A stretch of 64,000 nucleotides of DNA from Amoeboaphelidium protococcarum X5 (taxonomy: Eukaryota > Fungi > Aphelidiomycota), in assembly GCA_023515725.1 (NCBI GenBank), contig JALDTO010000146.1:310001-374000 (forward strand). Direction: 5' to 3'. Of this stretch, positions 6,075-23,811 are shown one piece after another. Both the position numbers and the translations under genes were made by a program. The notes beneath the pieces are model-generated. The model did not search any database. It was not told where the DNA came from and saw only the letters and a program-made list of their open reading frames with translations. Position 1 is the stretch's first letter. The number at the start of each line of letters is the position of its first letter.

Positions 6075-9000
6075 CATGGACATTAAACTCAGATTACTAT
6101 TGAAGCCCCCAAAAGATAAGTTATAGAATAGAAATTAAATTAAATTCATATCATACATCAAAATGTGTAGAGCCTTTTTGGAAAAGCAGATGGCACGATA
6201 AAGAAGTCAGCCATATTAAACACCATGCTCCAGGAAGCTGCCCTTGGTATCACGTAATAGATTGATTTTCTTATACTGACGGAGACGTGGGCACCTGCTA
6301 GTGATATCACGAAATGGATTAAAAAAGACAGAATTCTTAACCAGTACTATGGCATAGTCACCGATCATAACGAGGACTCTAATCATTACGACAAACATGG
6401 AAAAGGCACTGCCATCGTATACGCCAAATGCTGGTAAGGTTACATTCAAAAAGTGTATAAACTGGAAGGAAGAATAACATGCATGTAGCTTAGATGTAAA
6501 GACAAGGATATACTGATCGGCTGCTTCTACTTACCATCTGCGCCTAATAGGAAGGAGAACTACCCAGAAATGAAGAAATTCTCAGACAAGATGGAAGAAA
6601 TTCTCTCTAAATCTGATAACTCGATACACACTATCTTTGGAGGAGACTGGAATTGCGCTCTCAATCCATCTATAGACAGATCAACACAAGGAGACAGTAA
6701 ACCGCGCCAATGCACCACCAAAGCTGAGGTTAAAATAATGCGTTAAATTATTAGCGACGAACATAAGCATAGGCTGACTGACATTTGGAGACTACTCAAT
6801 CCAAATAAGAGAGAGTATACTCATTCTGTATCATTGGTAAAGGTGTTAAATCGGAATCACGAATAGACTATTTTCTTATGAACGATAAGAGTATATCAAA
6901 AGTCCGAGAATGTAATATCATTACGAACATTAATTTGGGGTCGAATACTCACCATAAAGCTATCACTTTAACTCTGGAGATAGACTTCAATAGAGATATC
7001 ATATACACGCGAAAGCAAAATGCTGAAGCCATAAGAATTAACCTCAGAAAAGTGCAGTAAAAACACATTTAAGCATACAACGAGAAACTCGCTGCGTAAC
7101 TTATAACTGCCCCACCTGTCAAAATGAGCAATTTGGATCAGGTCAGGACCCTCCCTAATTAATCACTTAAGAAAAACATCAGATGCTTGCCTATGCGTAC
7201 TCCTTGTCTCAGCCTCACATCCATCCTAACACGACGTTATGACTACAAGTCTGTTAAATACTATGCTCAACTGAAAGATATATAACGTCGTGCGAAAACT
7301 GAAGCAATATCATAAAACGACATAGAGTTGGTATAATAATATCTGAAATAATTTGACACAGACATTAGCGAATCTCAAGTAACTTGCAGAGATAATCTAA
7401 CAGAAAGAATTAAGGCCTGCCTCAAGTTGATGAACTAATACCTGAACAAGAAAGCTCTAGAACAAAGGTAGAAAGCTCAATAGATGAAGGACTAAGGATT
7501 CATTCTTAACCGAAAAGCCACAATGAAGAACATATTTAACCCGACGGTGTCTAATGAACTGCAATATGTAACTTTAGAAGATGGCACTCTAATAAATGAT
7601 CCTGATGGAATCAAACAAGAACACAAACGCTTTTGGCAAAGTATCATGTCACGCTAGGCTCCAACAAAAGAAGAAGAGATAGAATATTAGGCCGAATGGG
7701 GAAAATACTTTCGTCCTCTCTCAGAAATCAATCCAAATATATATGAGAACATAATGCGCGATGTTAGTATGGACGAACTACAATGCTGTATAAAGATGCT
7801 CCCAAATGGTAAAGCAGCCGGGCCGTCTAAAATCACCAACGAATTTTTCAAACTTCTCACCGAATAGTCTGTACTCCAACTGATCCTGGACATCATAAAC
7901 TGCATCATTGAAAATAAGACCGTCCCGTAAGTAGACAGGCTAGTTGAGATTGTTCTACTGCCTAAGAAAGAGAACCATTAAGGCAAACTGGGTAATTTCA
8001 GACCTATCTCATTGATTGATTCGCTGAAAAAGTTGCTAAGCTCAATCATGACTAAGAGAATAAAATAAACAAGGTGCTGAACTAACACTAAATTCTTAAA
8101 GCTAACAACAATGGATTTAAAAGCAACCGCTCTACTGCAGACTCTCTACTCGACATAAAATTAGCAATGGACTATGCCCACATGAAAAAAAGAAACCTAT
8201 TTATTGCTGGAGCAGATGTATTTAAAGCTTTCGACTCTGTACCAATAGAAGGCAATGTTAACTCTCTGCGAAGAATTAAAACTCCAGAAGATCTAATCTA
8301 ACTAATAGTGGCACTACTGGTTTAAAGAGAAATTACTATTTAAACGGTAGCAGGCCATACTGAACCTTTTAAGCCAGAGAGGGGAGTGGCTTAAGGCGAT
8401 GCACTGTCTCCAATACTATTTATTATATTCTACGACCCATTATAAATCGCAATGGAAGATTAAACAGAAGGACTCTAGTTCAATGAAAATCTTAAAATTA
8501 CCTCTACTGGATTCGCGGACGATTTGGCTCCAATAAGGGAAACTGCAGAGGACTGCTAAAAGCAATTAGATTTGATTGGGTCGTTCCTAAAGTGCCACTA
8601 AATGAATGTGAATGCCAAGAAAAGCTATGTGCAGACAAACATTAGCTTCACCTAACAGAGTAAGCTAATTTTAAAAATTAATGGATAAACTATAGATTAG
8701 ATCATAGGGAAGACCGAAGTGGTCAGATACTTGGGAGCGAAATGGTCATTAGTAAAATCAACTACAAAGGCTACTAAGCTAGCAAATTAAAGTCTCAATT
8801 TCTGCCTCCGTTCAAGGAGAGGATAGTAAACTCGTGGCATTTAAGATGTTTACATCGTCAACCGCAAAATAATCCCGCTCATTGCATACCAACTATAGCT
8901 CTCAAACGTTTCAGACTCCAAGACCGCCTAATGGGACTCCAAAATTAGGAGCCTTATTAAGCAGAAATCAGAACTACCACGTACAGCTGCTACATCCATT

Positions 9001-19926: not shown

Positions 19927-20328
19927 TCATTGCATAGCAGTCTCCTTCTAAACTCTAGAGTGATAAGCTTTGGACACAATATTCCACGCGTCCATGTATC
20001 TGTCCATGCACTTGGCAAGACATGTCTACTCAGAGCTATCCAGCTTGGTACCAGGCTTGGTGACGCACTTCTTGAAGCATTTATCATTCATTGTCTACAC
20101 ATGAAGAAGATACGGTTCATAGCGCGAACGTAGAGTAATTCATAAATTAGAATATCATAATGAGATAGGACGACTTACATTTAAAAGCTCCTGGGCATTC
20201 AACACGGCCATCTCGGCGCGTACTTGGTCCATAATTTAATCTTTCTACTACAGTACTTACGCGCCATTTAGTCCACCCATTGAAGAGTCGATATCAGGCG
20301 AAGAGCTGGCTGTCGATGAGAAATCCAT
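19927..20328 (-). CDS. TIM13: Mitochondrial small Tim chaperone Tim13
   Basis: AVLNAQELL, twin CX3C (CFKKC, CLAKC), MDRYMDAWNIVS. Intron 20095-20178. Confidence 0.93.
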
Positions 20329-20526
20329 TCTTGATTATTGTAATTATTTGGCGTTTAGCAAATGCTGAATGATTAAAAAGTGAACAAAAGATGGATGAAA
20401 AGCGAGGCCAGCGAGAGACCGACTGACATCTCAAGGTAAATTATAAACGGCAACTAAAAAAATGATTAACGCTAATTAAAATACTTTGATTTACAACAGA
20501 AATATAGATTCAAATGTACATGATGA

Positions 20527-22056
20527 TCAGCATTGGAATTAAGATACGCCGACTATGGTCCAACACTAAGAGTCAGACAAGGAGTCGACATCGGCTCTCA
20601 CACGAGAAGATGGACACAAAGCGGTGAGTGGCAAAGATACTGACTAATCTTGATCAGCCCGACTAGTACCTAGATATTTAATAGCGTGCCCATTTTATGA
20701 TATTTCAGCGACTTGTAAAGCCACTCGGTGCATTTAGCTCACGTAACAATCAGTCTGCTACGAGTCCAAAATCACTTGATTGTCCTTTCCCAGTCTGACT
20801 ATCCTGCAAACAACATCCATGTTCAATGCATCCGTCTCCACAGGACTGAGAACAACATATGTATTGTAAGCAATCGGTGTGCCAGCAGGTGCGTAAACTC
20901 TCGAACCATCACGGCAAGAAAGCAGAGAACGAACAATCATTGGAGTCCAGTCTTACGAGTCAGCAGTTAAGTGTCGTCGATGTTATAACTAATTCTATGA
21001 CAATGTCTACCCAACATTTATGTAACGCGTTCGCACATTCTAACAATTGATACGATTAAAGAATGCTACATTATCACCACATAAAATGGACCCAACTGGT
21101 GCTTTAATACCGGGCCGACCCAACGCAGCAGTCTGTCCATGCTGTTTAGATTTGGTCACTTTCTTGGAAGGCTTAGATATAAGCTAGATGTTGCATGATA
21201 AAGCTTCATAAATGCCGCCATCTACATTTGCACTAAGCTTAAGGTTCACATGACCAACTTTATGACTATCATGACCAGCTTGCGACGACCGCGAGGTAAC
21301 AGTGGACGGAACATGAAGAGACTTGAAGGAACATGTTGCAATACCATTAGCAGGCAAACTCAATTTACTCAACTGATCAGCAGCCGATATCTCTTGGCTA
21401 TTTATACTCAAACCCAATCTGAGAACACCATTAACATCTTTACCAAATCTTGACTGATCAGATACGGCTACTTTTGGTGGAGGACACATAAAACGCTTCT
21501 CTTGTCCATAAGATTTCTAAACAACAACCGCGTGCCAGCATTCAAAACGATAATGTTAAGCTCTCTGAATATAATCTCCAGACAAAGGGGAAATTGACTC
21601 TTGTATTGAAGCAGGTAGAGCAACAGGATACGGCATCTATACAGCGCACAGTCTAGGAGAAGGCGTGGGTGCAATCTATGGAGGCGACGCATAACCAGAT
21701 CTTCTGTCAAAATCCGAAACAACTGAAGATGCATCAGACGATGTGTATTCATCATGTGGGGTCTCTGAGTAGAGCAGATTCTAAATCGCTAATCGGTTGC
21801 TATGAAACTGGCGACGATCCTTTGATAAGCAATCTTTGCCAAATGATGATAATCCTTGAACGTTATCTGCAGCTTCAATAGCCATTAGAAGAACATCAAG
21901 ACCAGTCTGCTATTATTGATGCGGTACTGGAGCGGTTTTCACACAGATACGTTTCGTACTAGCTAACTCGCCATGATCACTAGAGTCGAGACAACGCTTC
22001 AACAAGCCAGATTAAGCGGGCGGTAGTGACATTTAAGCAGAAGCAGGCGGAATCAT
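20527..22056 (-). CDS. CSL (CBF1/Su(H)/LAG-1; Cbf11/12) family transcription factor, 509 aa
   Basis: HAVVVQKSYGQEKRFMCPPP (first Q=TAG), FKSLHV, ISKPSKK, VAFFNRINCQNVRTRY, VSQMHRVAL, WTIVG. These are LAG1 DNA-binding and beta-trefoil motifs. No C-terminal IPT domain evident. Confidence 0.92.
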
Positions 22057-22162
22057 TATTTATACAGAAAGACAGAGTGTTATATATCCCAATAGTTGAT
22101 AGATAGATAGATAGATAGACAAAATAAAGAAGTGAATGAACAAGTAATGACGATAAAGAGCC

Positions 22163-22651
22163 AGTGGGAAATATTTGAGGCAAGCCGTGTGAAAGATCGA
22201 TTGTGATTTTCAACAATCGTGTGGAGTCAACTCCGCCTGCGTGATTTTCCGTTTCGTCGGTTCCCACGATTGTAATGGCAGCGCGGCAAACAACGGCAAG
22301 TGAAAGACGCTTATAAGACATAAACTCCCGTGTATTAATTTGACAATCAAATATAGACAATGCTAGTGACCAAATTAAAAATTAGTGTTTAAGCCCATAT
22401 AAATAGACACATGAAGCCTGATTAACGAGGTATCAAGGTTTGTGTGAGAATCATTGTTGGCGTGGGAACAGCTGATGCTCATCGATCGATGGCGTGTGAA
22501 AACTTTCCTCGTCATCACATCATCCAATTTCACACGGCGATTTTCACACGCTTTTAAAGTTCATTAGTGTCGATACTATGATCATGCAAGAGTTAAATCC
22601 ACCTCAACTAAAATCATAGAAGCAAGAAACATTCATTGCGATTTTCACACG
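22163..22651. promoter_or_regulatory. Cluster of CSL-type binding sites upstream of the CSL gene
   Basis: YGTGDGAA at 22186, 22443, 22461, 22493 (+) and 22261, 22529, 22543, 22644 (-), plus AGTGGGAA at 22163. Confidence 0.7.
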
Positions 22652-22738
22652 CTTTTAAAGTTCATTAGTGTCGATACTATGATCATGCAAGAGTTAAATC
22701 CACCTCAACTAAAATCATAGAAGCAAGAAACATTCATT
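22537..22738. repeat. Perfect tandem duplication, 2 x 101 bp
   Basis: Unit GCGATTTTCACACG...AAACATTCATT starts at 22537 and again at 22638. Confidence 0.95.
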
Positions 22739-22752
22739 ACGATCAAACACAT

Positions 22753-23811
22753 TCAAATTTACAATGTAAGATGTTATGATACTGACTTGGAGTCATCATC
22801 TACTAAGTACTTGGCAATGATCTCCTCCGAAAGCCATTGCTATTCAATTTGCATGTGGCCGCCATCTTTGATGAGTAAAATCAGGCGATCGCTCTCATCC
22901 AACTGTTTCAGACCAATCCAATCATCCTTATACAGTTCAGATTCGCGTAATGACACTAAGCGCTTACCACTATCACTCCATTGTCCAAACCAGGCAGTTT
23001 CTTTAGGAATAGCCATAGTGTCATTGCTGAACATCACCAATACCAACTTGTTTAATTTAAGCATATTGTTCTTGTAAGCTTCATTCTTACCGGCCTTCTC
23101 ATTATTGATGTCTGGTAGAAATATGTTGGACCATAAGTATGAATCCAACTACTAAATATCGCGATAGTATTAGGCCTGAATCACGCGAGATTGAACTTGA
23201 GGTAGGTATACACCCCTCTTAATTGCCATTCTAGCCAAGCTACACCACCAAGAGCTTTAGACTACATCGTTAGAATCGTCTCCAAGTAGTGTCTCTTGTA
23301 TCTCATCACAATTAGGCATAGCAGATTATCCGCCGTGCTGAGAGCCAAAAGTGATCAAATTATGAACTTGAACAGAGTTGCAACGCTCAACATAAGCCCT
23401 CAAAACCTGTCCACCTTATGAGAATCCGAGAGCATTAACACCAGAAGCTTTTAACAGATCCAAATCAGATTAGGATACTGATTTCATGGTGCGTAAATTA
23501 ATCACATTGACGCCTGAGTTCGATTTACCATTCATAACATTACACAATCCCTGTACTTGATCATTCAGATTGCCAAAGAAGGAAGCTTTTTAATCAGAAT
23601 CTGCACTGCCATCACCGATTTGTACCGAGTAAACATTAACATCTGGTAAATGATCCCATATAGATTTAGCCACACTGAGCATTGATCTTTCGTTGCAACA
23701 ACTGTCCCCCATACCATGCCACAGCAACACTGGCTTTCCCTGTTATGACGCGTTGATTACACATTGAGACAGAGCTATAACTGTCAATATAATATTTTTT
23801 GCAGACATCAT
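22753..23811 (-). CDS. PPT1: Palmitoyl-protein thioesterase
   Basis: Signal peptide, LWHGMGDSCC, GFSQGG (Q=TAA), NLITFGSQHGG, FLPDINNE, DWIGLKQLD. Confidence 0.95.

Follow-up and report, generated by a model that had tools for sequence, protein, structure and literature searches.

A dense cluster of CSL-binding motifs lies directly upstream of CSL-1, a gene for a member of the CSL family in the aphelid Amoeboaphelidium protococcarum, and this cluster probably acts as a promoter module to which CSL binds in Notch-independent auto- or cross-regulation. Nine GTGDGAA cores, eight of which conform to the fuller pattern YGTGDGAA, are found at positions 22163–22651 of the window (the whole 64,000-nucleotide stretch of DNA that was analysed, C146:310001–374000 of a 23.6-Mb genome), that is, 107–595 bp 5' of the CSL-1 start codon. 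CSL is best known for its place at the nuclear end of the Notch pathway, which raises the question of the role that it played before Notch. To our knowledge, Notch is not expected in fungi and aphelids; a six-frame search of the genome for Notch-LNR gave no candidates, and the controls were without a match too.

CSL autoregulation is known from Schizosaccharomyces pombe cbf12 and Drosophila Su(H), so that the kind of circuit is already familiar. What is new is an aphelid case with the densest cluster of its genome, in which both CSL paralogues are marked and CSL-1 itself has a truncated architecture. Also new is that the motif is enriched at CSL genes across fungi, no report of which was found in the literature consulted.

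The CSL-1 gene and its product

CSL-1 occupies positions 20530–22056 of the minus strand and consists of a single exon of 509 codons, recognized by its reading frame and its LAG1-DNAbind matches. The frame extends from an ATG at 22056 to a TGA stop at 20530–20532 and includes 22 in-frame TAA or TAG triplets that are read as glutamine, TAA and TAG being sense codons here while TGA terminates. These triplets coincide with glutamine positions of related proteins, and in the second paralogue, CSL-2, one same position is TAR in one copy and CAR in the other. The Pfam profile LAG1-DNAbind matches the stop-free piece of CSL-1 with 32.7 bits (cut-off 25) and reaches 46.5 bits in a six-frame search, where profile positions 2–150 of 152 are covered. 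It scores 55.1 bits (cut-off 25) on P0001, the product of the second copy, or homeologue, of CSL-1. The last two scores bear out the identification of the gene as CSL in a preliminary description of this DNA. P0001 is a public model of 509 residues, deposited as a hypothetical protein of A. protococcarum; it is the exact translation of the homeologue with TAR as glutamine and is identical to the CSL-1 protein of the window at 464 of 509 residues.

The similarity to animal CSL proteins extends well beyond the N-terminal domain. With phmmer, residues 174–506 of P0001 align continuously to residues 27–311 of Drosophila Su(H) (E 8e-11), an alignment that spans the beta-trefoil domain as far as the domain-bridging strand. 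The Pfam BTD profile scores 14.2 bits on P0001, under its cut-off of 25, and has a match in the relative P0004. Pfam and PDB searches on short beta-trefoil pieces of CSL-1 gave no match, and six-frame genome searches with BTD and TIG_SUH produced no candidates, their controls being without a match as well. The residues that contact DNA can be compared directly: FNRLRSQ of Su(H)/RBP-J corresponds in the alignment to FNRINCQ of CSL-1 and FNRVKNQ of CSL-2, so that Arg218 and Gln222 (mouse numbering) are retained in both paralogues. The equivalent of Gln222 in CSL-1 is encoded by TAG, and the N-terminal domain block KSYG-EKRF-CPPP is intact. The substitution R218H abolishes DNA binding in mouse CSL and in both fission-yeast CSLs (PMC3598750).

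The C-terminal Rel-homology/TIG domain is missing from CSL-1: in both homeologues the frame ends 7 residues past the CWTIVGV strand. At least 129 residues follow the bridging strand in 117 of 121 fungal CSLs. The downstream neighbour, a small Tim gene (Tim10/DDP; 19951–20334, minus strand), starts ∼200 bp past the CSL-1 stop and therefore leaves too little space for a C-terminal CSL domain. The early end of the frame and the proximity of the next gene together argue that the C-terminal Rel/TIG domain is lacking, and CSL-1 is, as far as its alignment and gene structure indicate, a truncated variant of the CSL family. As this domain is absent and the BTD score stays under the Pfam cut-off, the competence of CSL-1 to bind DNA is a prediction from alignment only. 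When the window is compared with the second copy of the gene on C207, the divergence is 15.4% at third codon positions and 4.9% at first and second positions, a disparity which indicates that both copies of CSL-1 are under purifying selection.

Organization, density and conservation of the site cluster

The intergenic region that holds the cluster measures 783 bp and is bounded upstream by the stop codon, at 22840, of a palmitoyl-protein thioesterase gene (last exon and stop 22840–23148, minus strand; Palm_thioest 114.5 bits). The three sites closest to CSL-1, namely AGTGGGAA (22163–22170, plus strand), CGTGTGAA (22186–22193, plus) and CGTGGGAA (22261–22268, minus), are contained in a proximal conserved block (22137–22283) whose 148 aligned columns are 100% identical to the homeologue. 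The distal block (22442–22550) accommodates five sites in 108 bp: TGTGAGAA at 22443 and CGTGGGAA at 22461, both on the plus strand, followed by CGTGTGAA at 22493 (plus), 22529 (minus) and 22543 (minus). The adjacent sites at 22529 and 22543 may have originated by a 14-bp microduplication. A ninth site, CGTGTGAA at 22644–22651 (minus), is supplied by a 101-bp tandem duplication (22537–22743; 2.0 copies, 99% identical) which is missing from the homeologue and hence recent. Between the cluster and the CSL-1 ATG lies a (GATA)5.5 microsatellite (22098–22119) that is not in the homeologue. All site coordinates and strands given in the preliminary description, eight for YGTGDGAA and one for AGTGGGAA, proved correct, as did its attribution of the 22644 copy to the 101-bp duplication.

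Five of the nine sites are CGTGTGAA, and the other four have GTGGGAA or GTGAGAA as their core. The base that precedes the core is C in 7/9 sites and the base that follows it is A or C in 8/9, flanks matching the animal consensus YGTGDGAAM. Head-to-head Su(H) sites in the SPS elements of animals are set at a characteristic spacing; the CSL-1 cluster is without a head-to-head pair at 15–17 bp, and the sites at 22493 and 22529 form a pair 28 bp apart. The Posakony laboratory defined Su(H) sites as YGTGDGAA, leaving out TGTGTGAA (PMC3390367), a variant that is not present among the sites of the CSL-1 cluster. Mouse CSL has been crystallised on CGTGTGAA (PDB 3IAG); the protein binds with nanomolar affinity whichever base stands at position 5 and prefers at position 1 a C, which is read by Gln222, and CGTGTGAA is weaker than CGTGGGAA yet functional in reporter assays (PMC4176381). 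The admission of D at position 5 in the preliminary description is justified by this definition and by the crystal structure.

The cluster stands out against the density of the motif in the window and in the genome. YGTGDGAA occurs 18 times in the 64-kb window: 8 occurrences fall within 466 bp upstream of CSL-1 and the other 10 are scattered, in keeping with the isolated copies mentioned in the preliminary description. Genome-wide there are 3671 occurrences in 23.65 Mb (3861 for a reversed control), equivalent to one per 6.4 kb, close to the one per ∼5.5 kb that had been expected. At this empirical density, the number of 7-site clusters within 365 bp that is expected across the genome is about 1.6e-7. 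The whole genome was also searched for triples, defined as three GTGDGAA cores with gaps of no more than 60 bp, in all eight orientation combinations; clusters spaced wider than 60 bp would be missed by this search. Nine loci in 23.6 Mb were recovered, as against four for reversed-pattern controls, and four or more sites, visible as overlapping triples, are present only at the CSL-1 locus (C146:332444–332549) and its homeologue (C207:843759–843871). An equal density elsewhere, one of the weaknesses that the preliminary description had anticipated, is thus not observed. Another, membership in a dispersed repeat, is ruled out, as the 640-bp cluster region matches only itself and the C207 locus (86%) in the genome.

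The diverged copy of the CSL-1 neighbourhood on C207, which is either a homeologue or a deep allele, provides a comparison over 10.7 kb. Identity between window and C207 is ∼90% in the genes and 78% in the intergenic columns that do not belong to the sites, and all 8 non-duplicated sites are retained in the C207 copy. The 148-bp exact run that includes the three proximal sites is the longest in the 10.7-kb alignment and exceeds any coding run; the five distal sites are located in a second, near-exact block, in which one spacer has a 5-bp indel. The exact blocks are identical in spacers as well as in sites, two short palindromes included. As the spacers are conserved along with the sites, the conservation of the blocks is not motif-specific, and it could reflect additional bound factors or a gene-conversion tract. 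At 22196–22236, inside the 148-bp exact block, two perfect palindromes (CGATTGT..ACAATCG as well as GGAGT..ACTCC) are accompanied by two occurrences of GTGATTTTC; these elements, interposed between CSL sites, may be sites for partner factors. The 148-bp block has no Rfam match and no AUG on its sense strand, and its predicted RNA folding is no better than that of shuffled sequences (z −1.6 and −0.03). The absence of an Rfam match and the non-significant folding scores speak against a non-coding RNA as the explanation of the exact block.

CSL sites at CSL-2, at other aphelid loci and at fungal CSL genes

Four loci in the genome carry a LAG1-DNAbind match, corresponding to two paralogues in two copies each. 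CSL-2 has ∼918 residues, more than 300 of which lie past the bridging strand, where the C-terminal domain would sit. Both copies of the CSL-2 gene display the arrangement CGTGGGAA-N4-CGTGAGAA ∼75–100 bp 5' of the ATG, within a 58-bp exact block. A census of CGTGDGAA pairs no more than 30 bp apart was carried out over the whole genome: direct pairs number 19 vs 0 in controls, convergent pairs are found at 6 loci vs 1, and divergent pairs are not found in this census. Eleven of the direct pairs sit in a family of LTR retrotransposons. Once the retrotransposons are removed, five single-copy loci with paired sites remain, each of them in both homeologues: CSL-1, CSL-2, a sestrin/RhoGEF locus, a mitochondrial glycerol-3-phosphate dehydrogenase gene and a C1-tetrahydrofolate synthase gene. 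The chance that five random promoters would include both CSL genes is ∼3e-7.

The three loci other than the CSL genes differ in the arrangement of their sites. In the divergent promoter between sestrin (PA26) and RhoGEF, CGTGGGAA-N8-CGTGTGAA is kept in both homeologues (C98:1851881 and C264:1653681), and this promoter is a candidate CSL target. A convergent CGTGTGAA pair is situated ∼225 bp 5' of the mitochondrial glycerol-3-phosphate dehydrogenase gene (DAO and DAO_C; C155:376045, homeologue C25:71265). Directly upstream of the C1-tetrahydrofolate synthase gene, the arrangement is CGTGGGAA-N16-TTCACACG (C244:373346, homeologue C98:13212). The paired sites supply, for an organism without genetics, a short and explicit set of candidate CSL targets.

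As regards the retrotransposons, an LTR element in C146:454500–462500 has identical 241-bp repeats (1213–1453 and 6140–6380 of this segment) 4927 bp apart, with RVT_1 and integrase matches inside the element. Copies of the family are located at C206:124234/129160, C207:2379/7185, C192:698303, C192:698873, C13:4312 and C233:223440. The LTRs carry paired canonical CSL sites in the form CGTGAGAA-N24-CGTGGGAA, and related copies in the form CGTGGGAA-N20-CGTGGGAA. The sites suggest that the retrotransposon may borrow host CSL for its transcription.

Relatives of CSL-1 were sought by several routes. Homologue searches with P0001 alone or with an alignment of P0001 and P0004 returned almost nothing, a search of a representative library returned the homeologue and two weak matches only, and a metagenome search with a 110-aa stop-free piece of CSL-1 gave pattern matches with no confirmed relative among them. 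A region search with P0004, a relative of 594 residues from a Logan assembly, yielded 854 fungal CSLs. Nine loci were picked from the top of this match list before their DNA was inspected: two environmental contigs, the P0004 contig, two loci of Basidiobolus and one each of Cokeromyces, Jimgerdemannia, Saitoella and Hypsizygus.

The 1 kb upstream of the nine ATGs contains 15 YGTGDGAA sites vs 2.6 expected from the remainder of the same nine loci (Poisson 1.2e-7), and at least one site is present at 8/9 loci. When the positions of the motif are permuted, the true motif ranks first of 3360 permutations (15 vs a mean of 1.63, SD 1.45). The 19 neighbouring promoters contain 5 sites over 18.2 kb, so that their rate is lower by a factor of 6 (binomial 1.4e-4). 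The upstream sites of the nine loci are mostly TGTGGGAA. At a tenth locus (P0015), two sites fall within 1 kb and the total rises to six within 2.3 kb, which brings the fungal CSL loci with sites to 9/10 overall. The enrichment spans Mucoromycota, Zoopagomycota, Taphrinomycotina and Basidiomycota; it is based on a small sample of 9–10 loci with start codons as annotated, and its direction is clear. Orthologues were a further point raised in the preliminary description, and the motif is present at the homeologue and at both CSL-2 copies, besides being enriched upstream of nine distant fungal CSL genes.

P0004 and P0005, the nearest relatives of CSL-1, and CSL-1 itself (20530–20560; L006 5849–5880) end 7–13 residues past CWT(I/M)VGV, so that all three are devoid of the C-terminal Rel/TIG domain. 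A quick tree places the two aphelid paralogues apart and groups CSL-1, P0004 and P0005 together (SH-aLRT 96), with very long branches. The three proteins may represent a subclass of CSL without the C-terminal domain.

A proposed CSL feedback loop, its alternatives and known systems

The most probable account is that the interval between the thioesterase gene and CSL-1 serves as the CSL-1 promoter. The elements would form a homotypic cluster composed of two modules, the nearer one spanning −107 to −212 and the farther one −387 to −494 relative to the ATG, and of the duplicated site at ∼−590. On this reading, transcription would start downstream of the sites; some of them could, however, lie in the 5' UTR. 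The predicted occupants of the elements are CSL-1 itself and probably full-length CSL-2 too; the level of CSL would therefore feed back on the transcription of CSL-1 with no input from Notch. Few of the sites are strong (CGTGGGAA in two instances, TGTGAGAA and AGTGGGAA), the five CGTGTGAA sites being weaker; such a mixture suggests a response that is cooperative and of the threshold type. By analogy with S. pombe cbf12 and Drosophila Su(H), the sign of the loop is most likely positive. A Notch-independent CSL feedback loop had been put forward in the preliminary description. The tests of density, repeats and orthologues speak in its favour; the loop is less new than was implied, because autoregulation of Cbf12 in fission yeast has been published (PMC3516552).

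Cross-regulation alone, which we regard as rather unlikely, would assign the sites to CSL-2, with CSL-1 as a target or as a competitor that damps the output of CSL-2; the two genes would then form a cascade, or the loop would be negative, and there would be no self-activation. CSL-2 possesses all three domains and CSL-1 stops 7 residues past the bridging strand; sites are present at both genes, and in fission yeast Cbf11 and Cbf12 are antagonistic on shared targets (PMC4569565). However, DNA is contacted by the N-terminal and beta-trefoil domains, which CSL-1 retains together with Arg218 and Gln222, and the codon positions of CSL-1 bear the mark of purifying selection. Moreover, no sequence feature separates the specificities of CSL-1 and CSL-2.

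The likeness to CSL elements could also be a coincidence, the CGTGTGAA-rich cluster being bound by a different transcription factor with an overlapping motif, be it a T-box protein (half-site AGGTGTGAAA) or one that is unknown. This is improbable. The GTGTGAA of five sites is a T-box core too, Brachyury-type domains are encoded in the genome by a homeologue pair (C162:246832–247522 and C154:45800–46496), and the exact blocks hold further conserved sequence that does not resemble CSL sites. In T-box half-sites, however, a G precedes GTG; this base is found there in 0/9 sites of the cluster, and C in 7/9. Four sites, with GTGGGAA or GTGAGAA, do not fit the T-box motif, and CSL-2 carries only the canonical CGTGGGAA and CGTGAGAA. 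TGTGGGAA accounts for most of the enrichment in the nine fungal loci, and chance would have had to produce the same likeness at both paralogues and in more than one phylum.

Even less probable is a non-regulatory origin, in which the blocks are gene-conversion tracts, 5' UTR or non-coding RNA and the density stems from local duplications: the region is prone to duplication, as the 101-bp repeat attests, and the spacers are identical as well as the sites, but that repeat accounts for only one site and a microduplication for no more than one other, the remaining flanks are unrelated, the 148-bp block has no Rfam match, no significant fold and no sense AUG, and the sites at CSL-2 and at other fungal CSL genes would be left unexplained.

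Binding of the cluster by CSL for auto- or cross-regulation thus remains the preferred reading, and it bears on the history of the family. Aphelids form the branch next to fungi, and in the present species the concentration of CSL sites on the CSL genes themselves is, in silico, very clear. Together with the fly and fission-yeast cases and the enrichment in fungi, it turns the proposition that CSL feedback predates Notch into a concrete hypothesis. More tentatively, self-targeting of CSL might be ancestral: an auto- and cross-regulatory switch of two paralogues would descend from the aphelid–fungal, possibly the opisthokont, ancestor. Its aphelid arm would have lost the C-terminal domain, a small regulon (sestrin/RhoGEF, glycerol-3-phosphate dehydrogenase and C1-THF synthase) would be marked, and the motif would have been captured by an LTR retrotransposon. 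If so, animals would have put Notch on top of a pre-existing CSL feedback loop.

The aphelid arrangement can be set beside four known systems. In the SPS elements of animals, for example that of Hes1, CGTGGGAA and CGTGTGAA are used together, as in the CSL-1 cluster, and the N16 arrangement upstream of the aphelid C1-THF synthase gene shares their head-to-head orientation and their spacing of 16 bp; in contrast to the aphelid sites, the function of SPS relies on the dimerisation of Notch ankyrin domains. The lipid-metabolism targets of Cbf11 in fission yeast offer a second parallel: canonical elements of the metazoan type are located in promoters bound by a fungal CSL, and glycerol-3-phosphate dehydrogenase is among the few other aphelid loci with paired sites. 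However, the Cbf11 target promoters have single motifs, and self-targeting of cbf11 was not found (PMC4569565).

The Drosophila module Su(H) ASE5 is similar in its compactness and position beside a CSL gene: it measures 0.4 kb, contains five YGTGDGAA sites next to Su(H) and maintains Su(H) expression (PMC3390367). ASE5 is located downstream of its gene, is switched on by Notch and depends on inputs from Vvl and the A motif, whereas the predicted aphelid module lies upstream and has 8–9 sites, mostly CGTGTGAA. Positive autoregulation of S. pombe cbf12+ shares with the aphelid case a Notch-independent fungal CSL at its own promoter, binding being predicted in the aphelid: Cbf12 binds its own promoter in ChIP-chip experiments, and its ectopic expression raises native cbf12 more than three-fold (PMC3516552). 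For cbf12, in contrast, no dense homotypic cluster has been reported, and motif searches on the Cbf12 data gave none (PMC3516552). The proteins differ as well: Cbf12 is long and has three domains, whereas the aphelid CSL-1 is short and without the C-terminal domain, and sites are present at both aphelid paralogues.
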